From: Macrostomum lignano
Lineage: Eukaryota
NCBI GenBank assembly: GCA_002269645.1
Contig: NIVC01000590.1
Span: 60,531-124,530, forward strand
Direction: 5' to 3'
Length of the DNA stretch: 64,000 nucleotides
Position 1 is the first letter of the stretch. Every line of letters starts with the position of its first letter. Shown piece by piece: positions 1 through 58,649 of this stretch. A program made the translations under genes and the position numbers. Below the pieces are notes generated by a model. The model saw only the letters and a list, made by a program, of their open reading frames with translations. It had not been told where the DNA came from and ran no database searches.

Positions 1-137
1 CGCGCCAGTGCTGCTATACAACAGATTCCGAACGGCGCCATTTCGCACCGGGGTGGACTATGCGGACCGCTTCGTGGTCTACTTGACAAACCACGTGGAC
101 GAATTGCGCCCAGAGTTCACAAAGGCGGTCCTGTTTG
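1..137 (+). CDS. Gene 1, 3' end of a type-E domain exon (truncated by window edge)
   Basis: Reads ...LLYNRFRTAPFRTGVDYADRFVVYLTNHVDELRPEFTKAVLF-G, then donor G|GTAAGA at 137/138. Near-identical to the end of exon 51040-51654 (offset 51,517). Confidence 0.85.
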
Positions 138-236: not shown

Positions 237-848
237 AAAAAGGCAAGCAGCTGCTTTACACAATTGTTCCGAACGTGCACTTGGAGGCTCTAGAGACATT
301 TGAGCATCAACAAAACTACAAAATGCCCGCCAACGGATCTCTGCCTCCGGTCTACAGATCCGATCTCATCGACGAGCTTCCTCGAGCTGTGAGACAGTCG
401 GGAATGACCAAGATGGTCGTCGAGATGCGCAAAGACAATAAAGTCGTCTCTCAAGTGGCATTCGATGTTTCCACCGACACAGAGAAGCTCGACAAAGAGA
501 ACTGGTTCTCGCTGTTAAGACTGTACTCATCTTACCCTTATCCAATTAGTCGGAAAGAGTTCAACTACTTTTCTTTGGATGGGGATACTGGCCAGAAGCG
601 AAGATTCTACATCAGCAACCACTATGGAGGCTGTGACCGAGATTCAGGCTTCATCATGGTGTCTGACTCACGCGGCAGCTGCGACTGGGTAACTCGAGGC
701 TGGCGAGGCTCTCCTCCGAGTCTGGCCTACAACCGAGAGCAGGGTCGATCGTTCCACGACAGCGTTGGGTACGCGGACAGACTAGTAATTTACCTGACAA
801 AAGAGGTACTGGATCCTCGAGCCGAGTTTAAGAAGCCGCTAATCATCG
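237..848 (+). CDS. Gene 1, type-B' domain exon (612 nt, phase 1-1)
   Basis: Acceptor TTTTAG|AA at 236/237, donor G|GTAGGA at 848/849. Open frame with domain motifs YRSDL.D, NWFS, GGC..D.GF, C.W...GW.G, YADR..IYL. Confidence 0.88.
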
Positions 849-2293: not shown

Positions 2294-2906
2294 ATGGCAG
2301 CAAGCAGGTGCTGTTCACGATCAAATCCAACATCAACACCGAGGCCAAGCACGCATACTCTGTCCAGCAGAACTACAAGGCTCCGACTGACGGGTCTCTG
2401 CCTCCTGTCTACAGATCTGACCTGCTCGATCAACTCGCCCTCATTGTGAAGCAATCAGGAAAGAAAAGATTGTCGCTGAGATGGAAAAAGATGATCACGT
2501 GGTTGCTCGAATGGTGTTTGACTTGTCAGAGAAGACCGACGAGATCACACTGATGAACTGGTTCTCGCGCTCTCGACTCGTCTCGTCCTATCCATTCAAG
2601 ATCGATCCGAACAAAGCACGAACTACTTTAGTATTGACGGAGACGCTGGTCAAAACAGACGCTTTTTCGTTTCGTACTCTGGTGGTGGATGTGACAATGA
2701 TCGAGGCTTCTGGGTGGTGTCCGACAAACGCGATCCGTGCACTTGGGGCAACGAAGGCTGGAAGGGCTCGGCTCCAGTGCTGGTGTACAACAGATACCGA
2801 ACTGCCACCTTTAGAAGCGGAGTGGACTATGCTGATCGGTTCACGATCTACCTGACGGACTCGGTGACGGAACTGCGAGAGGAGTTCATTCGGAAGGTCA
2901 TGTTTG
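2294..2906 (+). CDS. Gene 1, type-A domain exon with two 1-nt deletions (613 nt versus 615; pseudo-exon or assembly error)
   Basis: Acceptor TTGCAG|AT, donor G|GTAAGA. Nearly identical to 5165-5779 and 9150-9764, but the A-run at 2464-2467 has 4 A instead of 5 and the run at 2610-2611 has 2 A instead of 3. Confidence 0.75.
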
Positions 2907-3267
2907 GTAAGAAATGTCAAATTAACACTTTTTTCATGGAAATTTCGTCGCTTTTTGCGCTTTTCTTGATAAGAAGAGTGAAAGCTATTTCATTATTACA
3001 CAAAAGTAAAAATAGAGAATATCTCTTTTAGAATCCAAACAAAATTTCAAGGCGTTTACAAAGTAGATATTCACATGGAAAATTGAGGTCAGACCGTATC
3101 AGTCATGCGCATTAAATGCGTTAACGTAGAATTTATATCACAATTGTAACTGAAAATTGCGGTTAAATATGCAATGATAAGGGTGGTTAGGAGGCAGAAG
3201 CAAAAATCGAATTACAACGTCGGGCAAGATCTTTGTAATGATTATTTGTCATGTTCTTCTGTTGCAG

Positions 3268-3882
3268 AAAAAGACAAGCAGCTGTTGTTCACCATCATCC
3301 CGAACGTGCACTTGGAGGCTCTGGAGACATTCGAGCATCAACAAAACTACAAAATGCCTGCCAACGGATCTCTGCCTCCGGTCTACAGATCCGATCTCAT
3401 CGACGAGCTTCCTCGAGCTGTGAGGCAGTCGGGAATGACCAAGATGGTCGTCGAGATGCGCAAAGACGACAATCAAGTCGTCTCCCAAGTGGTGTTCGAT
3501 GTTTCCACCGACACAGAGAAGCTCGACAAAGAGAACTGGTTCTCGGAGCTGAGACTTGAGTCGTCTTATCCGTACTCGGTCGATCGGAAAGAGTTTAACT
3601 ACTTTTCTCTGGAAGGCGAGAGAAGCTCGAAGCGACGCTTCTACATCAATAACTGGCACCACGGATGCCACCGAGAGACGGGCTTCATTCTTGTGTCGGA
3701 CGCGCGCGGTCACTGCGACTACGTGACTCGAGGCTGGAGGGGATCTGCTCCGACCTTGATTTACAGTCGACTACCTGGAAAGCCGTTCGAAGAGAGCGCA
3801 GGATACGCTGACAGGCTACTGATTTACCTTGCGAAGGAAGTTCCGGACCTCAGGGCCGAGTTCAAGAAGCCACTCATGATCG
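3268..3882 (+). CDS. Gene 1, type-C domain exon (615 nt, phase 1-1)
   Basis: Acceptor GTTGCAG|AA, donor G|GTAAGC. Open frame EKDKQLLFTIIPNVH...EFKKPLMI. Confidence 0.88.
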
Positions 3883-4449
3883 GTAAGCTAATAGTTGAAG
3901 CATGTATACACCAATAGGTCAGAAGAATCTCTTTATTTATTTTACTAAGTCAGTGTTAACTCAATAGAATTTTTTTAATTTGATTATGAGTGAAACGTAG
4001 CCCAAGTTCGAGGTTAGTGAAGTTTAGCTTTTTTGCCATTAGGTTTTTTATATCTTGGAACTTACTTGTACTTGAAGGGAAATGACAGATTTTACTATTT
4101 ATCAACTTCTATTATTGATAACTTTTTTAAATGATACATCGGTTGCCTTAGGAGTATTTAACAGTGAGGTGGAAACGCACTCCTTCACCAAAAATATTGA
4201 ATATAATATTTCTGATTCATCTTAAAAACATCTGCGGGGCAGGGAGACACTTTTGAAGGGTTCTGATGCTTTGCTTTAAATGGCTCAGAAATGGCAAAAC
4301 TTATCGTTTGATGTCCCTTATCCAACCTTCTGATATCAAGGAACTATTGATCCCTCCAGCTAATGCCGGCAACCCAGTAACTTCGATAGTCCAATTAAAC
4401 AAAGATTCTCTTCTCAGTGTTTTCGGAATTTATATTGTCTTCCGTAGTA

Positions 4450-4791
4450 CTAGTATGACTCCTCTGAACTTCTGAGGCGCTGAATTAGCTTTTGGGGCCC
4501 GCGGATGACGCCTTATAAATTTTTAGCAGAGTGCAAAGCCGGTTTGTACTTGTAAATACTGGTACCTTGTGTCGATAGCAGAGAACCAGTAATATTCGGG
4601 TGTTAGTTGTAACAAATATATCGCAAGCGAATAATTAGAATAGGTCTTGTCCCGAACAATTTAATAGTAAGTTTGCAAGTATTGACAGGGTCTTCCGGCT
4701 ATAAAGCACGGGACTATGTACTCCAAGAAAGAATGAGGACAAAATCAAAACAACAATAAGCCACCTAGCCAAGTAATACGCTCGTATATGA
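4450..4791 (-). mobile_element. Small non-autonomous Helitron (342 bp)
   Basis: Minus strand reads A|TCATATACG... at the 5' end, a hairpin (4461-4477), then CTAG|T at 4450. A^T target with no TSD. Confidence 0.55.
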
Positions 4792-5164
4792 TTTGACAGC
4801 CTGTATGCAATGGGCAGGTATTAATTATCACTGGCAGACCTATTCTTTCCGAATTTACATTTAAACTACGCCAGTCTCAAAAGAGTTTGCAATAACTAAG
4901 TAAACAGCAAAGGCTGCAGCTTCTTAGATTCATGGAATAAACTGGTGATAAAAAACTATCAAAAATTAAACAGAGAACGCCTAATCAGTTACTTTACAAA
5001 TACTGAATAAACTTCCTCTGGAGTTACTTCTTAATGACACCTAAGGAGAGAACCTAGGAGAGTCACACAAATCACTAATTTCGAAACATCTCAATTTGGA
5101 GTTTCAGAAAATATTAAATCTAACCATTATTGATGCCGAACGTTTAAAAATCTACTAATTGCAG

Positions 5165-5779
5165 ATGGCAGCAAGCAGGTGCTGTTCACGATCAAATCCA
5201 ACATCAACACCGAGGCCAAGCACGCATACTCTGTCCAGCAGAACTACAAGGCTCCGACTGACGGGTCTCTGCCTCCTGTCTACAGATCTGACCTGCTCGA
5301 TCAACTCGCCCTCATTGTGAAGCAATCAGGAAAGAAAAAGATTGTCGCTGAGATGGAAAAAGATGATCACGTGGTTGCTCGAATGGTTTTTGACTTGTCA
5401 GAGAAGACCGACGAGATCACACTGATGAACTGGTTCTCGCGCTCTCGACTCGTCTCGTCCTATCCGTTCAAGATCGATCCGAAGCAAAGCACGAACTACT
5501 TTAGTATTGACGGAGACGCTGGTCAAAACAGACGCTTTTTTGTTTCGTACTCTGGTGGTGGATGTGACAATGATCGAGGCTTCTGGATGGTGTCCGACAA
5601 ACGCGATCCGTGCACTTGGGGCAACGAAGGCTGGAAGGGCTCGGCTCCAGTGCTGGTGTACAACAGATACCGAACTGCCACCTTTAGAAGCGGAGTGGAC
5701 TATGCTGATCGGTTCACGATCTACCTGACGGACTTGGTGACGGAACTGCGAGAGGAGTTCAATCGGAAGGTCATGTTTG
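5165..5779 (+). CDS. Gene 1, type-A domain exon (615 nt, phase 1-1)
   Basis: Acceptor AATTGCAG|AT, donor G|GTAAGT. Open frame DGSKQVLFTIKSNINTEAKH...EFNRKVMF. Confidence 0.88.
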
Positions 5780-5799
5780 GTAAGTGTGTTATTGAAAGC

Positions 5800-6560
5800 A
5801 AAGTTATTTGTTTTTTTTGTTGATTGCTTGTTTTTGTTGTTCGATAAGGTTTTGAAGTTCGGCAATCTTGAGGGTAACATGGGCGTTTCCTTGGAGAAAC
5901 AGAACTGATTCCTTGCGCTTAATGGTGCGGCAGCAGGCGGGGCGGTCGGCGTGCTCCAGGGTCACCTCCGGGTGGCACGAGGTGATGCAATGTGGGCTGT
6001 TTAAGGCGGTCTGCGTTGCAATGGTTCTGTTAAGGTCGGGGCACACTTTGTGGCAATCGGCGGATGACGGCGCGGAATTTGTGGGTTCAGCCCCCGCAAC
6101 AGGCCGGGTTCAGATCCTGGGTTGCAGAAGTTTTAGTTCAGGGCGCACCAGCGCAACGGCTGGCTATCGAACTGACCGTGTCCGGTGTCGCCGGACATCG
6201 CTCAAACAAATCCACCCCTTGTACCTGGTGATTCCTCTGCAGGCTGTCGTGCGATTACAAAACGAGTTGCAGTTTTGATCGGCGTATTTGAGCGGGATGG
6301 TCCCGGTGTGAATTCTGGCGTCGCAGGAGAGGCACAGGGCCTGGACCGATTGCAAAGCGGAGGCGGGGGTGCTGAGTCTCGTTGTGTCGGTCATCACGAT
6401 CAAAATTGTGATCTGCGCTTTACGTTTGTATCTGATCCCGTTGATAGCGTCGGACTCCGCTGCATTCAATTTTCACATCTCACAATTCCGCTGCATTGTA
6501 ACAAGTACTTCGCAAAGTGTGCTTTGGCGCTGTAGGAATAGGAGATCTCTTCTGAGATCT
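5800..6560 (-). mobile_element. Degenerate non-LTR retrotransposon 5' fragment (PHD finger plus start of AP endonuclease), antisense in intron
   Basis: Minus-strand remnants CLSCDARIH...CNSFCNRTTACRGITRYKGWIC (PHD-like) and SVLFLQGNAHVTLKIAELQNLIEQQK (APE N-terminus, compare FLQWNAG in the paralog at 58640-59070). Many stops and frameshifts. Confidence 0.6.
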
Positions 6561-7630
6561 CTTCTGAGCGGTTGCAGTCATTGTTGTTAAACGGGGGGGG
6601 GGAAAGAGCTAGCTTCCCGCGGATCAGCCCTGAAGGGGGGGCTCTGCCGCTGAGTGGCACTTCCAGGGGCCTAAGCCCGAGATACCTTCCTGATTGGGCC
6701 CCGACGTCTAGGCCAGGGGGAATTTTGGGGCTACTAACCCAAACATGGTACAAGACACCGCCAACCCAAAAAGTGGAATCAGGGACGGTGCTAGGACCGA
6801 GTTTACCCAGGCTACCCCCCAGCAGACAAGTCCTCGGGAGTGCGCGAAAAACAGAAGCAGTTGCAGTCGTTGGGGCTTGGATTGCAAGCAGAGGCAAAAG
6901 AAGAAGCGTCAAAACTTGGGGCGTCGGACGAGCTGGAGCTCAGGGAAATAACCATGTAGTGTGTGCGCACCAGGAGAGGTGGTTGCCTGGTAGCAGGCAT
7001 CGTAGTACGGCAGGCCCCCGACCATCCGAGTCGCCTCGGAGAGGTGATGCCTATGACCACAGCTACATCGTTGTTAATACCGTGGCTGTCCATACCTGTT
7101 GATACGATGGGCCGCTGCTGCTGCTGCTGCTGCTGTGTGAGTGTCGTCGGGAACGATTTCCCCCCTGTCAGAGCAACTCTAGGCCACGGACTACTTAAGT
7201 ATACGCTAAGGGAAATTCAGCCTCCAAAAACATTTACACGAATCCTGCGTGTCGCGTCCTTTATAAACGACAATTAAATTGTCCCTGCTCTGGGCGGGCT
7301 GACCGAAGGAAACTTAACACTACGTCCTCATCACTCAAGCTGCTCTTGCTGCTGTCATTGTTGTTGTTATTGACCACCCACTGGGTCTCCTGGTTGTTTG
7401 ACCTTCCAATGCTAACTGGCTGCTTTGTGTGAGTTGTATCGGATTTTACCGTATTTAACTAATTTTCTACTATACTCGTATGTATAAGTTTGTGAGACGT
7501 TACGAATAAAATGATCCGTGCATTTAAAACCATTAAATACTCGAATAAGACTAATTAAGGTCGACAAAACTTATTCACCAGAAATAAGCACTGTAAAAAA
7601 TATTCCAACCTGCATCACTTTCCAATTTAG

Positions 7631-8245
7631 AAAACGACAAACAGCTGTTGTTCACCATCATCCCGAACGTGCACTTGGAGGCTCTGGAGACATTTGAGCA
7701 TCAACAAAACTACAAAATGCCTGCCGATGGATCTCTGCCTCCGGTCTACAGATCCGATCTCATCGACGAGCTTCCTCGAGCTGTGAGGCAGTCGGGAATG
7801 ACCAAGATGGTCGTCGAGATGCGCAAAGACGACAATCAAGTCGTCTCCCAAGTGGTGTTCGATGTTTCCACCGACACAGAGAAGCTCGACAAAGAGAACT
7901 GGTTCTCGGAGCTGAGACTTGAGTCGTCTTATCCGTACTCGGTCGATCGGAAAGAGTTTAACTACTTTTCTCTGGAAGGCGAGAGAAGCTCGAAGCGACG
8001 CTTCTACATCAACAACTGGCACCACGGATGCCACCGAGAGACGGGCTTCATTGTTGTGTCGGACGCGCGGGGTCACTGCGACTACGTGACTCGAGGCTGG
8101 AGGGGATCTGCTCCGACCTTGATTTACAGTCGACTACCTGGAAAGCCGTTCGAAGAGAGTGCAGGATACGCTGACAGGCTACTGATTTACCTTGCAAAGG
8201 AAGTTCCGGACCTCAGGGCCGAGTTCAAGAAGCCACTCATTATCG
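7631..8245 (+). CDS. Gene 1, type-C domain exon (615 nt, phase 1-1)
   Basis: Acceptor AATTTAG|AA, donor G|GTACGT. Near-identical to 3268-3882. Confidence 0.88.
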
Positions 8246-8491
8246 GTACGTTATACTGTTAAGTTTATTGGTTGGGATCACAGGATTTACGAGTACTGCG
8301 TTTTATCTGTTGGCTGATTTCTTCACAGATTGGTATATAAAAGCTTTAAAAATCTCAAAGAGTTTGCTGAAGAAACAAAATTACGATTACTTGTTTACTG
8401 TTGGAATTTTTTTATAGCTTTTTGCAGCCCCATGTGAGCTGACACGGATAAGATTTAATCCAAGGAGTTCTATAGAACTCCATGACATATT

Positions 8492-8685
8492 GGGCCGTAT
8501 GCAGAAAGCTCTGTCTAGGGTAGTCCGGTCTTGAAAAGCTAGTCTGGACTTGGATTTGGTATGCAGAAACACAAAGTTAGACCAGTCTACTATAGACAGA
8601 ACTAGGGTAGCCGGACCATAGAATATAGACTGAACTACCCAAGTCCGAACTAGCTAGTCTGGACTAAGCTTTCTGCATACGGGCC
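8492..8685. mobile_element. MITE, PIF/Harbinger-like (194 bp)
   Basis: TIRs GGGCCGTATGCAGAAAGCT and AGCTTTCTGCATACGGGCC, with a 3-bp ATT duplication on both sides. Confidence 0.7.
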
Positions 8686-9149
8686 ATTCTGTCAGGCAGC
8701 CTTGCTACCACAGACAAAAGCTGCATTATTTTGGACAACATACGAGCATATCTTGGATTACAGTGCGTTTAGGCCCAAATTGGCTGAAAAAAGCTAACAT
8801 TTTATGAAAAAGTGCCATTATATTAATGTTTAAAAAAGTCAATTTAAAACCCTGGGTTAACCATGACTTTATTCATAGAGACAAGGCCATGTGTTCGCGG
8901 ATCGATACCGACGAAAAGCTCAAGAACAAAGAATGCAGGGAGTTGGTATACCTCGCTAGGGCTGAGCGTACACGGTCACTAACTGACAAAGAGAGATAGG
9001 TTGATGCAAAACTGTACACGCTGAGTAAGTCCACTGGCTAGTTTAAAAGGCACCAGCCTACAAGGACAAGACAGCTACCTATATATGCAATAGTACCTCG
9101 TAGAATGCCCTAGAAAAAATTAATTTTTTATTCAACTCTATTGACGCAG

Positions 9150-9764
9150 ATGGCAGCAAGCAGGTGCTGTTCACGATCAAATCCAACATCAACACCGAGG
9201 CCAAGCACGCATACTCTGTCCAGCAGAACTACAAGGCTCCGACTGACGGGTCTCTGCCTCCTGTCTACAGATCTGACCTGCTCGATCAACTCGCCCTCAT
9301 TGTGAAGCAATCAGGAAAGAAAAAGATTGTCGCTGAGATGGAAAAAGATGATCACGTGGTTGCTCGAATGGTGTTTGACTTGTCAGAGAAGACCGACGAG
9401 ATCACACTGATGAACTGGTTCTCGCGCTCTCGACTCGTCTCGTCCTATCCATTCAAGATCGATCCGAAACAAAGCATGAACTACTTTAGTATTGACGGAG
9501 ACGCTGGTCAAAACAGACGCTTTTTCGTTTCGTACTCTGGTGGTGGATGTGACAATGATCGAGGCTTCTGGGTGGTGTCCGACAAACGCGATCCGTGCAC
9601 TTGGGGCAACGAAGGCTGGAAGGGCTCGGCTCCAGTGCTGGTGTACAACAGATACCGAACTGCCACCTTTAGAAGCGGAGTGGACTATGCTGATCGGTTC
9701 ACGATCTACCTGACGGACTCAGTGACGGAACTGCGAGAGGAGTTCAAACGGAAGGTCATGTTTG
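9150..9764 (+). CDS. Gene 1, type-A domain exon (615 nt, phase 1-1)
   Basis: Acceptor GACGCAG|AT, donor G|GTAAGT. Open frame. Confidence 0.88.
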
Positions 9765-9845: not shown

Positions 9846-10451
9846 AAAAGAGCAAGCAGCTGCTTTACACCATTATTCCGAACGTGCACTTGGAGGCTCT
9901 GACAACATTCGAGCATCAACAAAACTACAAAATGCCTGCCGATGGGTCTCTGCCTCCGGTCTACAGATCCGATCTCATCGACGAGCTTCCTCGAGCTGTG
10001 AGACAGTCGGGAATGACCAAGATGGTCGTCGAGATGCGCAAAGACAATAAAGTCGTCTCTCAAGTGGCATTCGATGTTTCCACCGACACTGACAAGCTCG
10101 ACAAAGAGAACTGGTTCTCGCTGTTAAGACTGTACTCATCTTACCCTTATCCAATTAGTCGGAAAGAGTTCAACTACTTTTCTTTGGAAGGGGATGCTAG
10201 CCGAAAATTCTACATCAGCAACCACTATGGAGGTTGCACCAGAGATTCAGGCTTCATCATGGTGTCTGACTCACGCGGCAGCTGCGACTGGGTAACTCGA
10301 GGCTGGCGAGGCTCTCCTCCGAGTCTGGCCTACAACCGAGAGCAGGGTCGATCGTTCCACGAAAGCGTTGGGTACGCGGACAGATTGATCATTTATCTGT
10401 CAAACGAGTTCCTTGACCCACGTGCCGAATACAAAAGATTTATTATTTTCG
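9846..10451 (+). CDS. Gene 1, type-B domain exon (606 nt, phase 1-1)
   Basis: Follows an 81-nt intron. Acceptor CTTAG|AA, donor G|GTGAGT. Open frame EKSKQLLYTII...EYKRFIIF. Confidence 0.88.
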
Positions 10452-16149: not shown

Positions 16150-19100
16150 GCGGAAGCGGTGTGGAAGCAACTCGGCCGACCTCCGCTGACACCAACACGC
16201 CTGCGACTCCGGACCTGGACTGGCGAGCCAATACAAGTCAAGGGAACAGCCGAGGTCAGGGTCAACTACGACGGAGGACAGTATGGTAAGCTGCCGCTGG
16301 TGGTCACGAGTCAGACTGGAGCCTGCCCATTGATGGGATGCAATTGGCTGGGAAAAGTGCGACTCAACTGGACTCAGTTGTTTGCCAACCAGATCAGCCA
16401 GGCGCCGGCGCAGAACAGCGGGCCTCTCGACCAGATGCTGGAGGAGTTCGCTGATGTTTTCGACGAGAGCCTGGGGCAGTTGAAGGATCAGACAGTCGCA
16501 CTGAGACTTAAAAGTGACGCACAGCCTCGATTCTGCAAGGCCAGACCCGTGCCATTCGCAGTGCGGGACAAGCTGGAGCTCGAGCTCTAGGACATGCTCA
16601 ACAAAGGCATCATCCGCCCGGTGACCTACAGCGAGTGGGCTACGCCAGTGGTTCCGGTACTCAAGGCGGACGGCTCAGTCCGACTGTGCGGCGACTATAA
16701 ACTGACGTTGAACCCTCAGCTCCACATCGACCAGTACCCGCTGCCTACGCCTGAAGAGCTTTACGAGCAGATGGGACGGGGTCAGCTGTTCTCAAAACTC
16801 GATCTGTCACAATGTTATCTTCAGTTTCCACTCGACGAAGAGAGCTGCAAGCTGACGACCATCAACACGCATAAAGGGTTTTTCGAGTACCTCCGGTTGC
16901 CATTTGGCGTCAGTTCGGCTCTTGCGATTTGCCAGAGGCTGATGGAAACACTTTTGAAGGGCGTGCCGGGAGTCTGTTGCCGCATTGATGACATCCTGGT
17001 CTCCGGTCCGTCAATAAGTGAGCACCTAGCAGCGCTTCGCGAGGTACTGACCAGGCTGAGAGCGGCGGGCTTGCGGCTGAAGCGAATCAAGTGCAAATTT
17101 CTGCAAGAAGAAGTCGAATACCTGGGCTCGTTGCTGAGCAAGGACGGAGTCAAGAAGCTGCCTCAGAAGGTGGAAGCAATAGTCAACAGCCCGAAGCCAG
17201 TGACAGTATCAGAGCTGCGATCATTCTTGGGCCTCGCAAACTACTATGCTCGACATGTCAAGGACTTCTCCACGATCGCTGCTCCTCTGTATAAACTTTT
17301 GAGGAAGGAGACGGACTGGCGGTGGGCTGAGACGGAGGACCGAGCCTGGGACCATCTTAAGCAAGAACTGAGTTCGGACAGCGTGCTGACACATTTCAAC
17401 GAGCAGCTTCCAGTGGTGGTGGCCGCGGATTCTTCATCGGTCGGCATCGGCGCGGTGCTGTCCCACACGATGGAGGACGGCTCGGAACGGCCGGTGACTT
17501 TTGCTTCCAGGACGCTGTCAGCAGCGGAGCGAAATTACTCGCAAATTGAGAAAGAAGCCCTCGTCATCGTGTTCGCCATCAAGCGGTTCCACCAGTACCT
17601 GTTCGGCCGGAGCTTCACGATAATTACGGATCATCAGCCGTTGACGACGATTTTCGGACCGAAGGTTGGCATCTCCCCGACTGCAGCAGGGCGACTTCAG
17701 AGATGGGCACTGCTGCTGTCAGGGTACAGCTACAGCATCCGGTTCCGCAAGACTGCTCAGCACAGCAACGCAGACGGCCTGTCTCGCTTGCCCCTGCAGA
17801 TGAAGGACGACAGCCCAGACGACGACGATCGGGTCTGTCAGCTGACGGGCGAGTTTCCATTGACGGCGGCGGATGTAGTTGCAGCAACAAAGCGAGATGA
17901 CGAGCTCCGAGATGTTCTCCGGATGATAATGACTGGCTGGCCAGAGTCGGTTCCCCCGGGGCTCGAGCCCTACTTTCGTCGTCGACTAGAACTAAGCGTG
18001 GAAGACGGCTGCGTGATCTGGGGAACTCGCGTGCTGGTTCCGGAAGCGTTGCGACCTGGAGTTCTGCGCGAGTTACACGTGGAACATTTCGGCATGGCCC
18101 GGATGAAAAGTGTCGCCAGAATCTTCGTCTGGTGGCCAGGAATGGATTCTGACATCGAGTCGGTTGCCAGCAGCTGCCAAGCCTGCCAATCCGTTAAGCT
18201 GCATCCGGTGCTGGCTCCACTGCACCCCTGGGTGTGGCCAGACCAGCCCTGGGACCGCATCCACGTTGATTTTGCCGGGCCGGTTCGAGGCCGCCAGTTT
18301 CTCCTCGTAGTCGACGCGCACTCAAAGTGGCCGCATGTGGAGGCCGTGTCAACACTCGAATCGGCCGAGCTGGTTCGTAAGCTGCGAGTGTTGTTTGCAC
18401 AATGGGGCCTGCCGAGAGAACTGGTATCGGACAACGGTCCAGCATTCATCAGTCAAGGATTTAGCGATTTCTGCAAAGCAAATGGAATTCGCCACACAAG
18501 AAGCAGTCCATATCACGCCAAGACCAACGGACTGGTGGAACGGCTGGTGAAGTCGTTCAAGATGGCCATGGAGGCGTCACGAAGCAGTCAGCCGGACCTC
18601 GACATCCGCCTGTGCAACTGGCTGCTGGGCTACCGAGCTAGTCCGCACCCAACGACCGGTCGGACACCAGCGGAGCTCTTCCTGAAGCGGCAGCTCCGGA
18701 CTCGAATGGACCTGCTGAGGCCGTCAGCCCGGGATCGAGTACTGCGGGAGCAATCTGCCCAGAAACGACAGCACGACCGGCGGTCGCGGGAGCTGCCGGA
18801 GGAGCCGTGGTCGGAGGCCTGGGCCAGGGACTACCGGCCTAATGCGGCGGTCTGGCAACCAGCAAAAGTTCTCGAGCAGACTGGACCGCTGAGCTTCCGA
18901 GTCGAAACGAGCGACGGCCTGACCTGGCGCCGTCATGCCGACCAACTGCGGGGCCGGCGAGTCGAGAGCGACAAACCTGACGGTCCGGCAGCCGGGACCG
19001 AGCCAGCTGAAGCTGCGGACTCGACCGGGACCGGCGCGGAGCACCCGGAGCCGGAGCCGCCAGACGCGCCCTGCGGACTGCAGCCTGCACGCCGGCGACG

Positions 19101-19364
19101 GCCACCTGAGAAGCTGACCTACTCGAAACTCGGGAGCTGTGATTGATAGGGAGCGGACTTCTTCTGAGAGGGGAAAAGTGTCATGACTTATGGGGTGGGG
19201 GCCGCGTGGTAGGGGTGGAGCTTGTCTAGTAAGCCTAGTTAGCAGTACGTACGGTAATGTACATGCGCGGGCCACCGTGCCCCTTGGCCTATAAAATATA
19301 CAGAGCGTGGAGGGTTTTGCCTCAACTGAGTTTACTCCAGAATAAGCGACTTGACTTCATTACA
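16150..19364 (+). mobile_element. 5'-truncated Gypsy LTR retrotransposon with 186-bp 3' LTR
   Basis: PPT GAGAGGGGAAAAG at 19166-19178. LTR 19179-19364 reads TGTCATGA...TCATTACA and contains TATAAAA. No 5' LTR, gag or protease active site upstream. Confidence 0.85.
16159..19146 (+). pseudogene. Gypsy pol (partial protease, RT, RNase H, integrase) with one in-frame TAG
   Basis: Protease C-half (WKQLGRP...LMGCNWL), RT (RIDD), RNase H (DSS...EKEAL...TDH), integrase HHCC and D,D,E (DFAG, DNG, LVER). TAG at 16588-16590 is in frame between the two listed ORFs. Confidence 0.9.
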
Positions 19365-20611: not shown

Positions 20612-21839
20612 TCGTGTCTGGGTCAATCGTGTCTGGGTCAATCGTGTCTGGGTCAATCGTGTCTGGGTCAATCGTGTCTGGGTCAATCGGTCTGGGTCAA
20701 TCGTGTCTGGATCAATATTGTCTGGATCAACCGTGCCTGCATCAATATTGTCTGGATCAACCGTGCCTGCATCAATATTGTCTGGATCAACCGTGCCTGC
20801 ATCAATATTGTCTGGATCAACCGTGCCTGCATCAATATTGTCTGGATCAACCGTGCCTGCATCAATATTGTCTGGATCAACCGTGCCTGCATCAATATTG
20901 TCTGGATCAACCGTACCTGCATCAATATTGTCTGGATCAACCGTGCCTGCATCAATATTGTCTGGATCAACCGTACCTGTATCAATATTGTCTGAATCAA
21001 TCGTACCTGGATCAACCGTGCCTGCATCAATATTGTCTGGATCAACCGTGCCTGCATCAATATTGTCTGGATCAACCGTGCCTGCATCAATATTGTCTGG
21101 ATCAACCGTGCCTGCATCAATATTGTCTGGATCAACCGTGCCTGCATCAATATTGTCTGGATCAACCGTGCCTGCATCAATATTGTCTGGATCAACCGTG
21201 CCTGCATCAATATTGTCTGGATCAACCGTGCCTGCATCAATATTGTCTGGATCAACCGTGCCTGCATCAATATTGTCTGGATCAACCGTGCCTGCATCAA
21301 TATTGTCTGGATCAACCGTGCCTGCATCAATATTGTCTGGATCAACCGTGCCTGCATCAATATTGTCTGGATCAACCGTGCCTGCATCAATATTGTCTGG
21401 ATCAACCGTACCTGCATCAATATTGTCTGGATCAACCGTGCCTGCATCAATATTGTCTGGATCAACCGTACCTGTATCAATATTGTCTGAATCAATCGTA
21501 CCTGGATCAACCGTGCCTGCATCAATATTGTCTGGATCAACCGTGCCTGCATCAATATTGTCTGGATCAACCGTGCCTGGATCAACCGTGCCTGCATCAA
21601 TATTGTCTGGATCAACCGTGCCTGCATCAATATTGTCTGGATCAACCGTGCCTGCATCAATATTGTCTGGATCAACCGTACCTGTATCAATATTGTCTGA
21701 ATCAATCGTACCTGGATCAATTGTGTCTGGGTCAATCGTGTCTGGGTCAATCATGTCTGGATCAGTCGTGTCAGGATCAATCGTGTCTGGGTCAATCTTG
21801 TCTGGGTCATGCCGTCTCTGGGTCAAAGAGCCAACCCCG
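20612..21839. repeat. Minisatellite: 30-bp core TATTGTCTGGATCAACCGTGCCTGCATCAA flanked by 15-bp TCGTGTCTGGGTCAA units
   Basis: Direct tandem periodicity, which gives 10-aa repeats in the ORF track. The array ends in CCCCG|TA. Confidence 0.95.
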
Positions 21840-22324: not shown

Positions 22325-22752
22325 TTGAGTCACATTGCACTGAGTTTGGATGTCATTGCACTGATTTCGGGTGTCATTGCATTGAGTTTAGGTGTCATTG
22401 CACTGAGTTTGTGTGTCATTGCACTGAGTTTAGGTGTCATTGTACTGAGTTTGTGTGTCATTGCACTGAGTTTAGGTGTCATTGTACTGAGTTTGTGTGT
22501 CATTGCACTGAGATTGGGTGTCATTGCACTGAGATTGGGTGTCATTGCTCTGAGTTTAGATGTCATTGCTCTGAGTTTGGGTGTCATTGCACTGAGATTG
22601 GGTGTCATTGCACTGAGATTGGGTGTCATTGCACTGAGTTTAGATGTCATTGCTCTGAGTTTGGGTGTCATTGCATTGAGTTTGGGTGTCATTGCATTGA
22701 GTTTGGGTGTCATTGCATTGAGTTTGGGCTTCATAGCACTGAGTTTGTGTCA
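22325..22752. repeat. 21-bp minisatellite (GTGTCATTGCACTGAGTTTGG)
   Basis: About 20 tandem units; 7-aa periodicity in the ORF track. Confidence 0.95.
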
Positions 22753-23439
22753 TCGCGCAGCGGTTTCAAAAAAGTTTAAATGGCTTGCTGGCTGACAGAC
22801 TTAAAAATTTTTCACCGATTTTAGAGAAAAAAATTAGTCTACTGCTCTTCGTACCTATCAAAATCAAACAAAAAATTATCTTATCGAAATCATCCATTTT
22901 TCATAGCTATTGCAGTAACAACTCTTGAATCATTTATATCTCCTTTTGCGATAACGAGCACTTGAAAAGGTATACGCTCGTATTAATGCTCAACCCGAGA
23001 CGCGCCTTAGAAGTTTATGAAATCAATTTTGTGTTTTTGATTTCCAGAGCACTCTTTGCTTCACTCCCTGACCCTGAAAAGTAATTAAAGGTATTTTAGG
23101 CACTCATTTTTAGTGCCTAACTCAATCGTTCTTACGGAAAAATTACTCAGCAATTAGGCAACTTACCGCGCACTTTAGGAAGAACCGACAGCCGAAGCAC
23201 AGCATCTCTAAGTACCATGGCTTGGCGGCATCTTCGCGACTGGCTGCTCGCATTGTTGTGGGCCACCGCATCTGTTGAAGCTGCCGATGTGGCCTCGCCC
23301 AATGGCTTTGCATTTGGTAAGCCTTCTGCCCCTCTGCTTCGAATCTTAAGTTGCTTCAGATCTTTAGCTTGAGTTGCTTGCGTCATGGCCATTGACGTAT
23401 TATGCTTGAGACAGTTAGGGCATGCTTGGGAAATTCTTG

Positions 23440-37160: not shown

Positions 37161-38089
37161 CACAATTTCAAACGTAAAAGTGAGCGAATTTTGAAGGAGC
37201 CACTATAATGCTAAGGAAATTGTCGCACTAGCTACTTATTGTCTGGTGGATGTTTGCTATTTGGGGATGCTATCTATCTGGGGGATGCTTGCTATTTTGG
37301 GGATGCTTGCAATCTGGGGGATGCTTGCTATCTGGGGGATGCTTGCTGTCTTGGGATGATTTCTTTTTGCATTGCACTTCATTTGAGTAGTTTGTCTGTT
37401 TTCTTTGTGAAAGCTTTATTTGGCTATCTTCTTATTCCTTGTAGAGAACAGAGATTCTATACAGATGTCCCCCAACGGGGGGCGAAAATTGCTAGTCCCA
37501 TATACTAAAAATGAAATGTCTGTAGCTATGCGATAGATTTCAGAAAAATTGGCTCAACCGATTTTCTTCAAACTTGCACCATTCGATCAGAAATTTTCCT
37601 GGGACGGTACATGCATCTTGGCTAAGAAATTGCTCAATGTTAAAGGGATTAAATATTCGAAAAACATGCTTTTTTGCAAAGGTCAAGCCAAATTTTCGAC
37701 TTGAAATGCATTGTAAGAATTCTAGAGAAAAAACTGACTGACTGAATTCCGATTGTGATAAAGATTGCATCACAACAAGTTGAAAACATTGCCGAAGAAA
37801 TGCACACACGACTTGATTTAAATTGCGTAACCATATTGCTAACTTAAATTGAGACTGATACTGGCTGACTGAGAAATTGATTATGTCATAACTTTTTACT
37901 CCGATTGACTTGCTGTAAGAATTGAATTATAAGGGCCACAATTCATGTTCTCCAATTGAAAAGAGATAGCCCTGATGCGAACAGACTGGAATGCTAATGT
38001 AGCAACCTGGGTTCGAATCTTAGTAGTACAAAAAGATTTTTTTTATTATAACACCTTAAAAACACAACAAAACTGCTAAACATCAAAGA

Positions 38090-40160
38090 AGCGCAATGTC
38101 AAACATAGAAGAGCCAACATATCGAACATAAAAGAGTTACCATATCAAACATAGAAGAGCCAACATATCGAACATAAAAAAGTTACCATATCAAACATAG
38201 AAGAGCCACCATGTCGAACATTAAAGAGCCATCATGTCAAACATAAAAGAGCCACCATGTCAAACATAAAAGAGCCACCACGTCAAACATAAAAGAGCCA
38301 CCATGTCAAACATAAAAGAGCCACCATTTCTAACATTAAAGAGCCACCATTTCGAACATTAAAGAGCCACCATTTTGAACATTAGAGAGCCACTATGTCA
38401 AACAATTAAGAGCCACCATGTCAAACATAAAAGAGCCACCATGTCGAACATTAAAGAGCCACCATGTCGAACATTAAAGAGCCACAATGTCAAACATTAA
38501 AGAGCCACCATTTCAAACCTAAAGGAGCCACCATGTCGAACATTAAAGAGCCACCATGTCGAACATAAAAGAGCCACCATATCAAACATAAAAGAGTTAC
38601 CATGTCAAACATTAAAGAGCCACCATGTCGAACATTCAAAAGCCACCATGTCAAACATTAAAGAGCCACCATGTTGAACATAAAAGAGCCATTATATCAA
38701 ACATAAAAGAGTTACCATGTCAAACATTAAAGAGCCACCATATCGAACATTAAAGAGCAGCCATGTCAAACATTAAAGAGCCACCATATCAAACATAAAA
38801 GAGTTACCATGTCAAACATTAAAGAGCCACCATATCGAACATTTAAGAGCAGCCATGTCAAACATTAAAGAGCCACCATATAAAACATAAAAGAGTTACC
38901 ATGTCAAACATTAAAGAGCCACCATTTCGAAAATTAAAGAGCCACCATGTTAAACATTTAAGGGCCACCTTGTCAAATATTAAAGAGCCACCATTTCGAA
39001 AATTAAAGAGCCACCATGTTAAACATTAAAGGGACACCTTGTCAAATATTAAAGAGCCACCATTTCAAACCTAAAAGAGCGACCATGTCGAACATACAAG
39101 AGCCACCATGTCGAACATAAAAGAGCCACCATGTCGAACATAAAAGAGCCACCATGTCAAACATAAAAAAGCCAGCATGTCAAACATAAAAGAGCCAACA
39201 TGAAGAACATTAAAGAGCCACCATGTCGACCATTAAAAGAGCCACCATGTCGAACATACAAGAGCCACCATGTCAAACATAAAAAAGCCACCATGTCAAA
39301 CATTAAAGAGCCACCGTTTCAAACCTATAAGAGTTACCATTTTGAACATTAAAAAGCCACCATGTCAAACATTAAAGAGCCACAATGTTAAACATTAAAG
39401 AGCCACCATTTCAAACCTAAAGGAGCCACTATGTCAAACATAAAAGAGCCACCATGTCAAACATAAAACAGCCACCATTTCAAAAATTAAAGAGCCACCA
39501 TGTCAAACATTAAAGAGCCACCATGTCGAACATTAAAGAGCCACCATGTCAAACATAAAACAGCCACCATTTCAAAAATTAAAGAGCCACCATGTCGAAC
39601 AATAAAGAGCCACCATGTCGAACAATAAAGAGCCACCATGTCGAATATTAAAGAGCCACCATGTCGAACAATAAAGAGCCACCATGTCGAACATTAAAGA
39701 GCCACCATGTCGAACATAAAAGAGCCACCATGTCAAACATAGAAGAGCCACCATGTCTAACATAGAAGAGCCACCATGTCGAACAATAAAGAGCCACCAT
39801 GTCGAACATAGAAGAGCCACCATGTCAAACATAGAAGAGCCACCATGTCAAACATAAAAGAGCCACCATGTCGAACAATAAAGAGCCACCATGTCGAACA
39901 ATAAAGAGCCACCATGTCGAACAATAAAGAGCCACCATGTCAAATATAAAACAGCCACCATGACAAACATAAAAGAGCCACCATGTCAAACCTAAAAAAG
40001 CCACCATGTCAAACATAGAAGAGCCACCATGTCAAACATAAAAGAGCCACCATGTCAAACATTAAAGAGCCACCATGTCAAACATAGAAGAGCCACCATG
40101 TCAAACATAGAAGAGCCACTATGTCAAACATAAAAGAGCCACCATGTCAAACATTCAAGA
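38090..40160. repeat. 23-bp minisatellite, Helitron unit 4
   Basis: 23-nt periodicity; variant order almost the same as 41620-43670. Confidence 0.9.
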
Positions 40161-40259
40161 TATACAATTTCAAATGTAAAGGTATAAAGCGCCATGCCAA
40201 TTTAAAGGAGCCACTATAAAGCTAAGGAAATTGTCGCTCTAGCTACTTATTGTCTGGTG

Positions 40260-40875
40260 GATGGTTGCTATTTGGGGATGCTATCTATCTGGGGGATGCT
40301 TGCTATTTGGAGGATGCTTGCTTTCTGGGGGATGCTTGCTATCTGGGCGATGCTTGCTATTTGGGGTATGCTTGCTATCTGAGGGATGCTTGCTATCTGG
40401 GGAATGTTTGCTATCTGGGGAATGTTTGCTATCTGGGGAATGCTTGCTATCTGGGGGATGCTTGCTATCTGGGGGATATTTGCTATCTGGGGGATGCTTG
40501 CTATCTGGGGGATGCTTGCTATCTGGGGGATCCTTGCTATCTGGGGTATGCTTGCTATCTGAGGGATGCTTGCTATCTGGGGAATGCTTGCTATCTGGGG
40601 GATGCTTGCTATCTGGGGGATGTTTGCTATCTGGGGGATGCTTGCTATCTGGGGGATGCTTGCTATCTGGGGATGCTTGCTATCTGGGGGATGCTTGCTA
40701 TTTGAGGGATGCTTGCTATCTGGGGAATGCTTGCTATCTGGGGGATGCTTGCTATCTGGGGATGCTTGCTATCTGGGGGATGCTTGCTATCTGGGGGATG
40801 CTTGCTATTTGAGGGATGCTTGCTATCTGGGGAATGCTTGCTATCTGGAGGATGCTTGCTATCTGGAGGATGCTT
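40260..40875. repeat. 18-bp G-rich minisatellite, Helitron unit 4
   Basis: 18-nt periodicity. Confidence 0.9.
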
Positions 40876-41619
40876 GTGGTTTCGGGAAGATTTCTTATTG
40901 CAATTCACTTCATTTGAGCAGTTTGTCTGTTGTCTTTGTGAAGGATTTTTTGGCTGTCTTTTTGTTACTTGTAGAGAACAGAGATTCTATCCAGATGTCC
41001 CCCATCGGGGGGCGAAGATTGCTAGTCCCATATACTAAAAATGAAATGTCTGTAGCTATGCGATAGATTTCAGAAAAATTGGCTCAACCGATTTTCTTCA
41101 AACTTGCACCATTCGATCAGAAATTTTCCTGGGACGGTACATGCATCTTGGCTAAGAAATTGCTCAATGTTAAAGGGATTAAATATTCGAAAAACATGCT
41201 TTTTTGCAAAGGTCAAGCCAAATTTTCGACTTGAAATGCATTGTAAGAATTCTAGAGAAAAAACTGACTGACTGAATTCCGATTGTGATAAAGATTGCAT
41301 CACAACAAGTTGAAAACAGTGCCGAAGAAACGCACACACGACTTGATTTAAATTGCGTAACCATATTGCTAACTTAAATTGAGACTGATACTGGCTGACT
41401 GAGAAATTGATTATGTCATAACTTTTTACTCCGATTGACTTGCTGTAAGAATTGAATTATAAGGGCCACAATTCATGTTCTCCAATTGAAAAGAGATAGC
41501 CCTGATGCGAACAGACTGGAATGCTAATGTAGCAACCTGGGTTCGAATCTTAGTAGTACAAAAAGATTTTTTTTATTATAACACCTTAAAAACACAACAA
41601 AACTGCTAAACATCAAAGA

Positions 41620-43670
41620 AGCGCAATGTCAAACATAGAAGAGCCAACATATCGAACATAAAAGAGTTACCATATCAAACATAGAAGAGCCAACATATCG
41701 AACATAAAAGAGTTACCATATCAAACATAGAAGAGCCACCATGTCGAACATTAAAGAGCCATCATGTCAAACATAAAAGAGCCACCATGTCAAACATAAA
41801 AGAGCCACCACGTCAAACATAAAAGAGCCACCATGTCAAACATAAAAGAGCCACCATTTCTAACATTAAAGAGCCACCATTTCGAACATTAAAGAGCCAC
41901 CATTTTGAACATTAGAGAGCCACTATGTCAAACAATTAAGAGCCACCATGTCAAACATAAAAGAGCCACCATGTCGAACATTAAAGAGCCACCATGTCGA
42001 ACATTAAAGAGCCACAATGTCAAACATTAAAGAGCCACCATTTCAAACCTAAAGGAGCCACCATGTCGAACATTAAAGAGCCACCATGTCGAACATAAAA
42101 GAGCCACCATATCAAACATAAAAGAGTTACCATGTCAAACATTAAAGAGCCACCATGTCGAACATTCAAAAGCCACCATGTCAAACATTAAAGAGCAACC
42201 ATGTTGAACATAAAAGAGTCATTATATCAAACATAAAAGAGTTACCATGTCAAACATTAAAGAGCCACCATATCGAACATTAAAGAGCAGCCATGTCAAA
42301 CATTAAAGAGCCACCATATCAAACATAAAAGAGTTACCATGTCAAACATTAAAGAGCCACCATATCGAACATTTAAGAGCAGCCATGTCAAACATTAAAG
42401 AGCCACCATATAAAACATAAAAGAGTTACCATGTCAAACATTAAAGAGCCACCATTTCGAAAATTAAAGAGCCACCATGTTAAACATTTAAGGGCCACCT
42501 TGTCAAATATTAAAGAGCCACCATTTCGAAAATTAAAGAGCCACCATGTTAAACATTAAAGGGACACCTTGTCAAATATTAAAGAGCCACCATTTCAAAC
42601 CTAAAAGAGCGACCATGTCGAACATACAAGAGCCACCATGTCGAACATAAAAGAGCCACCATGTCGAACATAAAAGAGCCACCATGTCAAACATAAAAAA
42701 GCCAGCATGTCAAACATAAAAGAGCCAACATGAAGAACATTAAAGAGCCACCATGTCGACCATTAAAAGAGCCACCATGTCGAACATACAAGAGCCACCA
42801 TGTCAAACATAAAAAAGCCACCATGTCAAACATTAAAGAGCCACCGTTTCAAACCTATAAGAGTTACCATTTTGAACATTAAAAAGCCACCATGTCAAAC
42901 ATTAAAGAGCCACAATGTTAAACATTAAAGAGCCACCATTTCAAACCTAAAGGAGCCACTATGTCAAACATAAAAGAGCCACCATGTCAAACATAAAACA
43001 GCCACCATTTCAAAAATTAAAGAGCCACCATGTCAAACATTAAAGAGCCACCATGTCGAACATTAAAGAGCCACCATGTCAAACATAAAACAGCCACCAT
43101 TTCAAAAATTAAAGAGCCACCATGTCGAACAATAAAGAGCCACCATGTCGAACAATAAAGAGCCACCATGTCGAATATTAAAGAGCCACCATGTCGAACA
43201 ATAAAGAGCCACCATGTCGAACATTAAAGAGCCACCATGTCGAACATAAAAGAGCCACCATGTCAAACATAGAAGAGCCACCATGTCTAACATAGAAGAG
43301 CCACCATGTCGAACAATAAAGAGCCACCATGTCGAACATAGAAGAGCCACCATGTCAAACATAGAAGAGCCACCATGTCAAACATAAAAGAGCCACCATG
43401 TCGAACAATAAAGAGCCACCATGTCGAACAATAAAGAGCCACCATGTCGAACAATAAAGAGCCACCATGTCAAATATAAAACAGCCACCATGTCAAACAT
43501 AAAAGAGCCACCATGTCAAACCTAAAAAAGCCACCATGTCAAACATAGAAGAGCCACCATGTCAAACATTAAAGAGCCACCATGTCAAACATAGAAGAGC
43601 CACCATGTCAAACATAGAAGAGCCACTATGTCAAACATAAAAGAGCCACCATGTCAAACATTCAAGATAT
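41620..43670. repeat. 23-bp minisatellite, Helitron unit 5
   Basis: 23-nt periodicity. Confidence 0.9.
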
Positions 43671-43769
43671 ACAATTTCAAATGTAAAGGTATAAAGCGCC
43701 ATGCCAATTTAAAGGAGCCACTATAAAGCTAAGGAAATTGTCGCTCTAGCTACTTATTGTCTGGTGGAT

Positions 43770-44395
43770 GGTTGCTATTTGGGGATGCTATCTATCTGGG
43801 GGATGCTTGCTATTTGGAGGATGCTTGCTTTCTGGGGGATGCTTGCTATCTGGGCGATGCTTGCTATTTGGGGTATGCTTGCTATCTGAGGGATGCTTGC
43901 TATCTGGGGAATGTTTGCTATCTGGGGAATGTTTGCTATCTGGGGAATGCTTGCTATCTGGGGGATGCTTGCTATCTGGGGGATGCTTGTTATCTGGGGG
44001 ATGCTTGCTATCTGGGGGATGCTTGCTATCTGGGGGATCCTTGCTATCTGGGGTATGCTTGCTATCTGAGGGATGCTTGCTATCTGGGGAATGCTTGCTA
44101 TCTGGGGGATGCTTGCTATCTGGGGGATGTTTGCTATCTGGGGGATGCTTGCTATCTGGGGGATGCTTGCTATCTGGGGGATGCTTGCTATCTGGGGGAT
44201 GCTTGCTATTTGAGGGATGCTTGCTATCTGGGGAATGCTTGCTATCTGGGGGATGCTTGCTATCTGGGGGATGCTTGCTATCTGAGGGATGCTTGCTATC
44301 TGGGGGATGCTTGCTATTTGAGGGATGCTTGCTATCTGGGGAATGCTTGCTATCTGGAGGATGCGTGCTATCTGGAGGATGCTTGTGGTTTCGGG
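43770..44395. repeat. 18-bp G-rich minisatellite, Helitron unit 5
   Basis: 18-nt periodicity. Confidence 0.9.
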
Positions 44396-49329: not shown

Positions 49330-49953
49330 AGGACGGCAAGACGCTGCTGTTCACTATTCGGAGCAACATCGGCGAGGACCCGCAGAAGGCGTTCGTCACC
49401 CGGGGCAACGGCAACCGGCCAGCCCCGTCGCCCAGTGAGCCGCTGCCGGCCGTCTACCGGTCCGACCTGCTCGACGAGCTGCCCGACACTGTCCGCCGTC
49501 TAGACAAAACCTACATGGTCGCCGAGATGCGCGTCGACAGGGCCGTCGTGATGCGCGTCGTCTTTGATGTCGGCGACTACCCGGACAGCATAGACCAGTT
49601 CAACTGGTTCTCGCCGTCCCGCCTGATCGGCGCCTGGCCCTACCGCCTTGACGACGTGGCCAAGTTTAGCGCCTTCTCCATCGAGGGTGACGCAAACAAG
49701 GAGCGCAGGTTCTTCATAGCAACGAGCTTCGACGGCTGCAATGGTGACCGCGGCTTCTGGGTCGTGTCCGGCGCCAGAGATCCATGTGGCTGGGGCCGCA
49801 ATGGCTGGAAGGGCCTCGCACCGGCGCTGATCTACAATAGATTTAAGGACCGCACGCTGCAACAGGGCGCCGCGTATGCCGACCAGTTTCTGGTGTACCT
49901 CACCGACACTGTGGACGAGTTTCGAGCCGAGTTCAGGAAGCCCTTCTTCCACG
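49330..49953 (+). CDS. Gene 2, type-F domain exon (624 nt, phase 1-1), first recognisable exon
   Basis: Acceptor ATCGCAG|AG, donor G|GTGAGC. Open frame DGKTLLFTIRSNIG...EFRKPFFH. Confidence 0.85.
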
Positions 49954-58636: not shown

Positions 58637-58649
58637 GTAAGTGTGTTAT

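Follow-up and report, generated by a model that had tools for sequence, protein, structure and literature searches.

The question raised by this locus is how repeated exons of a single gene have come to be nearly identical to each other, while the introns lying between them cannot be aligned within the gene and are homologous, instead, to the introns at the same positions of a second gene. The locus lies in a stretch of 64,000 nucleotides of Macrostomum lignano DNA (GenBank assembly GCA_002269645.1, contig NIVC01000590.1, positions 60,531 to 124,530 of the forward strand; hereafter the window, its positions being counted from the first letter), which contains two tandem paralogous genes on the plus strand, about 50 kb apart, with one domain of ~205 amino acids encoded per exon. 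In gene 1, truncated by the window start, the exons follow in the order D3, B0, A1, B1, A2, B2, A3, B3 and D11 with the stop codon; gene 2 consists of exon 1, D1', D2', D3', B'0, A'1, B'1, A'2 and B'2, the last truncated by the window end (Table 1). Our answer, to which we give high, though not full, credence, is that the exons have been homogenized by homology-dependent ectopic DNA gene conversion halting where intron homology is lost.

Homogenization of the A exons within each gene

The three A exons of gene 1 differ from one another by 4–9 substitutions per 615 bp (98.5–99.3% identity; synonymous substitutions per synonymous site, dS, 0.011–0.037), A1 being separated from A3 by 4 and from A2 by 7 substitutions, and the two A' exons of gene 2 differ by 4 (dS 0.022). 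Between the genes, 57–60 substitutions separate A from A' (dS 0.18–0.24), about 52 of which are fixed by gene (three copies versus two), ~22–28 of these being synonymous. In the exon tree, the splits uniting the A exons of gene 1 and those of gene 2 were each recovered in 100% of 300 bootstrap trees, whereas grouping by position, the arrangement that the initial annotation had proposed to look for as evidence against its own reading, received 0%. Support was expressed here as split counts over the bootstrap trees, which replaced the clade values of Biopython, misleading because of rooting.

The haplotypes quoted by the initial annotation (AKHAYS and KKKIV for gene 1, ALSAYS and KTNIV for gene 2) are indeed present, with the correction that the reading frame of A1 is broken, and KKRLS is read there in place of KKKIV. 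The break is due to 1-bp deletions in an A5 run and an A3 run (near 2464 and 2611), and stop codons arise. Being of phase 1-1, A1 could be skipped with the reading frame preserved. The difference between the two haplotypes is distributed unevenly along the exon: in a hypervariable patch (5509–5567 in gene 1, 53006–53064 in gene 2; columns 344–402 of the alignment) 23 of 59 nucleotides differ between A and A', as compared with ~5% elsewhere. The patch reads GDAGQNRRFFVSYSGGGCD in A and GDAPLKRRFLASFSYGSCV in A' and is uniform inside each gene; a donor for it was sought inside the window and none was found.

Positional history of the introns

The similarity of the exon copies does not continue into the introns. 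For the 250-bp flanks on either side of A1, A2 and A3, and of B1 and B2, within-gene local alignment gave z-scores of -0.3 to 1.7 relative to shuffled sequences, i.e., no detectable homology, against z = 25–165 for the positional flanks of gene 1 and gene 2. Identity of the gene 1 exon copies ends within 5–8 bp of each splice site, which is inside the splice consensus. The picture drawn by the initial annotation, of A exons nearly identical up to their splice sites and flanked by unlike introns, is thus confirmed. A sensitive BLAST comparison among all 13 introns returned positional matches only, with the sole exception of the intron upstream of A'1 and A'2.

The positional correspondence of introns, also asserted at the outset, holds over shorter spans than had been given. 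The intron at 2907–3267 can be aligned with gene 2 only over 3019–3267 (versus 53346–53594; 97.2% identity, 7 mismatches per 249 bp), its first 112 bp being unalignable except for ~20 bp adjoining the donor site. The intron starting at 5780 resembles that starting at 58637 only at the two ends, namely in its first 413 bp (5780–6192; 77%, K = 0.18) and its last 292 bp (7339–7630; 85%, K = 0.105), while the GC-rich middle part (6192–7339) is without match in gene 2 or elsewhere in the window. The assignment of a long interspersed nuclear element (LINE) to this pair of introns was not confirmed, as no reverse transcriptase, EEP or endonuclease domain was found by Pfam in 5780–7630 or 58637–63793; the fragments in the latter gave a weak PHD match only (E = 5e-4, below the cut-off), and their open reading frames (ORFs) are degraded and retroelement-like by eye.

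The aligned positional blocks of introns, taken outside the recent tracts described below, gave a pooled Jukes–Cantor distance (K) of 0.217 (range 0.10–0.34). This value matches the dS of A versus A' and that of B0 versus B'0 (0.21), so that A and A' have diverged approximately neutrally since the gene duplication. As positional introns are shared between the genes and none is shared within gene 1, the array A1-B1-A2-B2 predates the gene duplication, and the identity of its exons is secondary. The dS among A copies of one gene is 5–20-fold under the neutral between-gene level (K about 0.22); the comparison of synonymous with intron divergence, recommended in the initial annotation, therefore came out in favor of conversion.

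Two explanations without conversion have to be considered against these values. On the first, exon units were duplicated recently through unequal crossing-over, and insertions and deletions then changed the introns fast. This would agree with the insertions contained in the introns and with the variable number of units in the protein models P0006, P0153 and P0154 (see below), a variation that makes some unequal exchange in the family probable. However, crossing-over would have copied introns along with exons, and within-gene intron similarity is absent, except for 157 bp preceding A'1 and A'2; moreover, the introns beside A1, B1, A2 and B2 have positional homologs in gene 2 at K = 0.1–0.34, as compared with exon dS of 0.01–0.05, and are thus older than the near-identity of the exons. 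We consider it very improbable that this process accounts for the pattern. Purifying selection alone, acting also on synonymous sites and without any sequence exchange, could draw on the constraint upon the domain exons (ratio of nonsynonymous to synonymous rates, omega, 0.1–0.5), but it can produce neither the ~52 gene-fixed differences with their ~22–28 synonymous ones, nor mosaic tracts, nor intron segments at 97–98% identity, and has next to no chance of being sufficient. Low dS within a gene (0.01–0.04) beside unalignable introns that predate the duplication therefore requires sequence exchange confined to the exons, as neither selection nor unequal crossing-over suffices. The two conclusions already drawn in the initial annotation, that plain duplication does not explain the locus and that gene conversion has operated within the gene, are thus both upheld.

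Recent tracts that carry intron DNA

Two recent tracts include intron DNA together with an exon. The first is shared by the two genes at B1 and B'1, with 7 mismatches in 249 bp of the upstream intron, 5 in the 615 bp of the exon and none in the next 25 intron bases, against 12 in the 66 bases beyond; upstream of 3019 the sequences are unalignable, and identity steps sharply both at 3019 and at ~3907. The second tract links A'1 and A'2 (z = 103 for the upstream and -0.1 for the downstream flanks). Judging from the sequence, the 157 bp upstream of A'1 are most probably a copy of the end of the positional A2/A'2 intron, which overwrote an earlier sequence. As tract ends are found inside exons as well as in introns, the tracts begin and stop wherever homology allows. 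The initial proposal that conversion is limited to exons thus describes the gene 1 tracts correctly, but applies neither to the B1/B'1 and A'1/A'2 tracts nor to those ending inside exons; the restriction to exons arises because intron homology has been lost, and is not built into the mechanism.

Mosaic B exons and the type switch at position 8

The rule that exons follow the gene, valid for the A exons, does not extend to all B exons. The gene 2 exon B'1 shares 99.2% identity with B1 and 98.7% with B2, both of gene 1 (dS 0.02–0.05), and clusters with B1 in 74% of bootstrap trees, while B3 of gene 1 clusters with B'0 of gene 2 in 90%, i.e., neither by gene nor by position. Mapping of conversion tracts, another of the checks suggested initially, was performed with a Sawyer-type permutation test and gave significant internal tracts for B3/B'0 (columns 278–434, P < 0.0005), B0/B3 (columns 409–523) and B'1/B0 (columns 56–142; P <= 0.0005 each), the B0/B'0 tract at columns 439–523 being likewise significant. 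The mosaic character of B3 is evident from its identity to B'0, which amounts to 99–100% in columns 300–500 and to 76–85% at the ends.

The B exons fall into two types, with 95–100% identity between type I and type II in columns 100–207 and 58–72% in columns 300–616. The exon at position 8 is of type I in gene 1 (B2, similar to B1) and of type II in gene 2 (B'2, similar to B'0), and the reading in the P0006 and P0154 models is type II throughout. Despite the difference in type, B2 and B'2 have the same 5' edge and the same upstream intron; the intron following B2 is similar over its first 12 bases to those following B0 and B'0. The switch might be accounted for by gap repair anchored in the conserved 5' half of the exon and in the conserved GCCGAGTTYAAGAAGCC segment at its 3' end. 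Replacement of an exon was also considered for A3, as overwriting a D3-like exon, and was rejected, since the similarity of the A3-B3 intron to the D3-B0 intron is not convincing.

Exon edges and the proposed course of conversion

Differences among the homogenized copies are concentrated near the exon borders: of the 27 sites varying within the three near-identical groups, 15 lie no more than 100 bp from an exon end (binomial P = 0.011). In the first 100 bp, where B2 and B1 differ at five sites, B2 has the state of B'2 at four of them, including the END start, and the 3' edge of A2 (columns 570–598) has states in common with the A' exons of gene 2 (P = 0.002–0.004). The exon ends thus partly follow position, as the introns do. 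Such enrichment is explained by homology-limited conversion, which predicts less efficient exchange beside a homology border.

The following course of events, in which the pathway of repair, the direction of transfer and the part played by selection are our inferences from the observed divergence pattern, tract boundaries, mosaic structure and edge effect, would account for the locus. The exon array and its introns would have been in place when the gene duplicated, at a distance of about K = 0.2 substitutions per site from the present. From that time on, a domain exon suffering a double-strand break would repeatedly have been repaired from a non-allelic paralogous exon, usually a nearby one of the same gene and occasionally one of the other gene. 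This would be a non-reciprocal, DNA-templated ectopic conversion, for which synthesis-dependent strand annealing is the simplest route, with tracts of a few hundred bp to ~0.9 kb formed only where donor and recipient have kept their similarity. The likeness of the exons is presumably maintained by purifying selection acting on the domain, while the introns would have drifted past recognition. Between exons at different positions, the tracts would then run out at the exon edges, and between positional counterparts whose introns are still alike they would extend into the intron. The expected outcome is that A1–A3, A'1–A'2 and B1/B2/B'1 are homogenized, the remaining B exons are mosaics and positional history survives in the introns. 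No new mechanism is revealed here; the process, concerted evolution by ectopic gene conversion, is a known one, of which the locus is a clean example.

Several observations fit this scheme less easily. A1–A3 are homogenized up to the 5' splice site, the first within-gene difference being at column 170, and fixed between-gene differences common to all copies of a gene lie only 6–13 bp from the exon ends, so that some tracts must have extended to the limit of homology with hardly any homologous sequence beside them. The exon type at position 8 implies, as far as can be judged from the alignment, a near whole-exon replacement over a core only 60–70% identical. A GC excess at third codon positions (GC3) is not observed, the values of homogenized and non-homogenized exons falling in the same range (0.59–0.68), i.e., there is no sign of GC-biased conversion; the intron tracts have 33–35% GC. 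A raised GC content is common in converted tracts, though not required. Finally, the evidence comes from one assembled haplotype.

Some of these observations bear on the nature of the template. The cDNA-mediated recombination and RNA-templated repair of double-strand breaks known from experiments in yeast and human cells would likewise confine exchange to exon sequence, and precise intron loss or fusion of neighboring exons is their hallmark. Applied to the locus, where the initial annotation considered a cDNA template possible, such a process would use the gene's own spliced transcript, out of register, as repair template, and exon boundaries would define the tracts. Consistent with this are the ends of gene 1 identity within 5–8 bp of every splice site, the homogenization of fixed differences 6–13 bp from exon ends, the change of type over nearly the whole exon at position 8 and an intact retrotransposon ORF with reverse transcriptase at 16594–19146. 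Nevertheless, two recent tracts hold intron DNA (249+25 bp and 157 bp). All introns are still in place, even the shortest, of 81 bp, between A3 and B3, and no neighboring exons are fused; some tracts end inside exons, and the exon edges keep positional states. Since DNA templates predict the same pattern once intron homology is gone, and explain everything seen, a cDNA is not required and receives no positive support, so that a transcript can hardly have served as the general template. The narrower notion that part of the homogenization was RNA- or cDNA-templated, with the switch at position 8 and the identity of A1–A3 up to the acceptor as the best candidates, seems to us equally doubtful, and deserves only slight credence; the switch at position 8 is the best remaining argument for an exon-delimited template.

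Independent gene models and the assembly question

The independent check used UniProt protein models derived from another M. lignano annotation. Four other gene models show the A and A' haplotypes as well. ALSAYS and GDAPLKRRFLASF are found in seven additional A' copies, distributed over P0154, P0155 and P0006. There are also variants peculiar to one model and common to all its A copies: both complete A copies of P0153 have LALT, KTKIV, VSFS, VLAY and NRKIMF, and three A copies of P0154 have DSVAEL. In P0001, the A1-specific DSV...EEFIRK and the B1-specific ANGSL of the window are present, and A1 is intact. The last A copy of P0153 bears the same KKRLSLRWKK frameshift as A1 of the window, hence the first of the A1 deletions may be real, and not a read error. 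Taken together, the models argue that the exon copies are real and distinct, with homogenization probably ongoing.

The number of A copies, which is one in P0006, about three to four in P0153 and four in P0154, differs from that of the window genes and points to unequal exchange, homeologous copies or assembly differences. The loss of one A-B unit of gene 2 by deletion was considered and rejected, as P0154 shows further A' and type II B exons past the window end.

Apparent homogenization might also have originated in assembly or polishing, if the other copies had been corrected with reads of a single exon copy. The genome of the neopolyploid M. lignano is hard to assemble (PMC10733133), the two 1-bp deletions of A1 are in homopolymers and typical of long-read errors, and the unit number differs between the window and the UniProt models. 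Against this, the copies are not identical, each having 4–11 differences, among them copy-specific amino acid states, and the states specific to A1 and B1 recur in the independent P0001, as do the A and A' haplotypes in the four other models. Each exon is, in addition, anchored by unique introns of 0.08–1.9 kb, which long reads can span, and polishing would give neither sharp-ended tracts bearing intron DNA nor an edge effect. We therefore regard an artifact as improbable.

Comparison with known systems

The closest parallel is provided by the tandem HMA4 paralogs of Arabidopsis halleri, for which divergence-dependent conversion combined with purifying selection was modeled, the exons being homogenized and long introns escaping (bioRxiv 10.1101/2025.10.29.685298). 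As in HMA4, the coding exons of the M. lignano locus are homogenized and the introns retain the history of duplication. In HMA4, however, whole gene copies exchange sequence and short introns are co-converted, whereas in M. lignano the exchange takes place mainly among the repeated exons of a single gene, all introns escape, including that of 81 bp, and the divergence is far deeper. Intragenic tandem repeats of coding sequence that resemble one another more closely inside a gene than across genes are likewise known from the spider silk genes Flag and MaSp2 (PMC9779670) and from the exon-2 repeats of SmPoMuc in Schistosoma mansoni (PMC2576457), but in these the introns are homogenized with the exons or even more than the exons, which is not the case here. 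The mammalian pairs BMP8A/B, DDX19A/B and TUBG1/2, in which conversion has gone on for a long time and paralogs are more alike than orthologs (PMC2720389), have in common with our locus the discrete tracts of the GENECONV type; they differ in that their tracts run over introns and exons and show raised GC, while ours are mostly bounded by exon borders and lack a GC3 signal.

The locus is an unusually clean natural case of two histories held side by side, recent exchange being recorded in the exons and the order of duplication in the introns. For the annotation and phylogeny of repeat-domain genes in M. lignano this is a warning, as exon trees mislead and intron trees give the true positional relations. 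Rough limits on tract length and on the minimal homology used in repair by this flatworm follow from where the tracts end, from the edge effect and from the switch of exon type, and the locus is suited to asking whether conversion can cross a core of 60–70% identity when anchored on short conserved ends.

The domain family and the organization of the locus

The origin of the DNA from M. lignano agrees with a protein search using the translations of exons A2 and B1, which returned only M. lignano proteins, the best match, P0001 (UniRef A0A1I8G039), being 98% identical. All domain exons have AG...GT borders, a length of 606–624 bp and phase 1-1, and thus stand in tandem with similar length and phase, as the members of a mutually exclusive exon array would; the gene models P0001, P0153, P0154 and P0006 place them in series.

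No Pfam family was found for the ~205-amino-acid domain when the domain itself and its distant relatives were scanned. Its AlphaFold2 model, built from a 10-sequence alignment, reached a pLDDT of only 66, and comparison of the predicted domain with the PDB by Foldseek gave nothing significant (best TM-score 0.35). The domain is marked by the motifs LPPVYRSDL, NWFS, GC..D.GF and ADR..IYL. A profile search with it gave 566 relatives at E <= 0.001, some of which are mosaic proteins containing also TSP1, C-type lectin, ZP or Sushi extracellular modules. The product of each gene is a secreted protein consisting of a string of about eleven such domains, which form an uncharacterized extracellular family.

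Table 1. Coordinates of the exons, introns and intron-bearing tracts of the two genes in the window.
Feature	Position	Strand	Remarks
Gene 1 D3, 3' end	1-136	+	Exon starts upstream of the window; P0002 residues 645-678 match 2-103 at 100%; aligns with 51518-51654
Gene 1 exon B0 (type II B domain)	237-848	+	612 bp, AG/GT, open in phase 1; dS to B'0 0.21
Gene 1 exon A1	2294-2906	+	613 bp; frame shifted by two 1-bp homopolymer deletions
Intron A1-B1	2907-3267	+	3' 249 bp (3019-3267) lie in a recent tract also present in gene 2
Gene 1 exon B1 (type I B domain)	3268-3882	+	615 bp; 5 differences from B'1, 11 from B2
Intron B1-A2	3883-5164	+	Homology confined to the gene 2 intron at the same position (K 0.21-0.34); nothing similar inside gene 1
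Gene 1 exon A2	5165-5779	+	615 bp, intact
Intron A2-B2 with GC-rich insert	5780-7630	+	Both ends homologous to gene 2 intron 58637-63793
Gene 1 exon B2 (type I, like B1)	7631-8245	+	5' edge with states common to positional B'2 (columns 4, 10, 96, 98)
Intron B2-A3	8246-9149	+	No match anywhere in the window
Gene 1 exon A3	9150-9764	+	615 bp, intact
Gene 1 exon B3 (type II)	9846-10451	+	Columns 278-434 a mosaic tract common with B'0
Gene 1 terminal domain exon D11 and stop codon	10581-11143	+	Translation ends ...ADRLVIYLM*; agrees with the C-terminal ends of P0006 and P0154
Gene 2 exon 1 (start codon, signal peptide)	23217-23316	+	tblastn of the P0002 N-terminus; GT donor after ...GFAFG
Gene 2 exon D1'	49330-49953	+	AG/GT, phase 1-1
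Gene 2 exon D2'	50033-50644	+	AG/GT, phase 1-1
Gene 2 exon D3'	51040-51654	+	AG/GT, phase 1-1
Gene 2 exon B'0 (type II)	51782-52387	+	
Tract shared with 57864-58639: 157 bp of intron and exon A'1	52506-53279	+	5 substitutions and one 2-bp indel per 774 bp
Gene 2 exon A'1	52662-53276	+	
Tract shared with gene 1 3019-3907, contains B'1	53346-54234	+	~0.9 kb
Gene 2 exon B'1	53595-54209	+	
Gene 2 exon A'2	58022-58636	+	
Intron A'2-B'2	58637-63793	+	Minus strand with fragments of degraded, retroelement-like ORFs
Gene 2 exon B'2, truncated at the window end (type II, like B'0)	63794-64000	+	94-100% identity to B'0

Other elements in the window

In the spacer between the genes, 16594–19146 of the plus strand is occupied by an intact ORF of 850 amino acids with RVT_1, RNase H-like and integrase domains (Pfam E 1e-13 to 1e-34), which is the pol gene of an LTR retrotransposon. 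Within the putative 26-kb first intron of gene 2, the region 26861–48602 consists of alternating satellites with units of 23 bp (AAACATTAAAGAGCCACCATGTC) and 18 bp (TCTGGGGGATGCTTGCTA), which form a higher-order repeat of ~3.5 kb, 38078–40876 resembling 41608–44385. Just upstream of exon 1 of gene 2 there are two minisatellites, one with a unit of 30 bp at 20614–21809 (40 copies, 93% matches) and one with a unit of 21 bp at 22333–22747 (20 copies).

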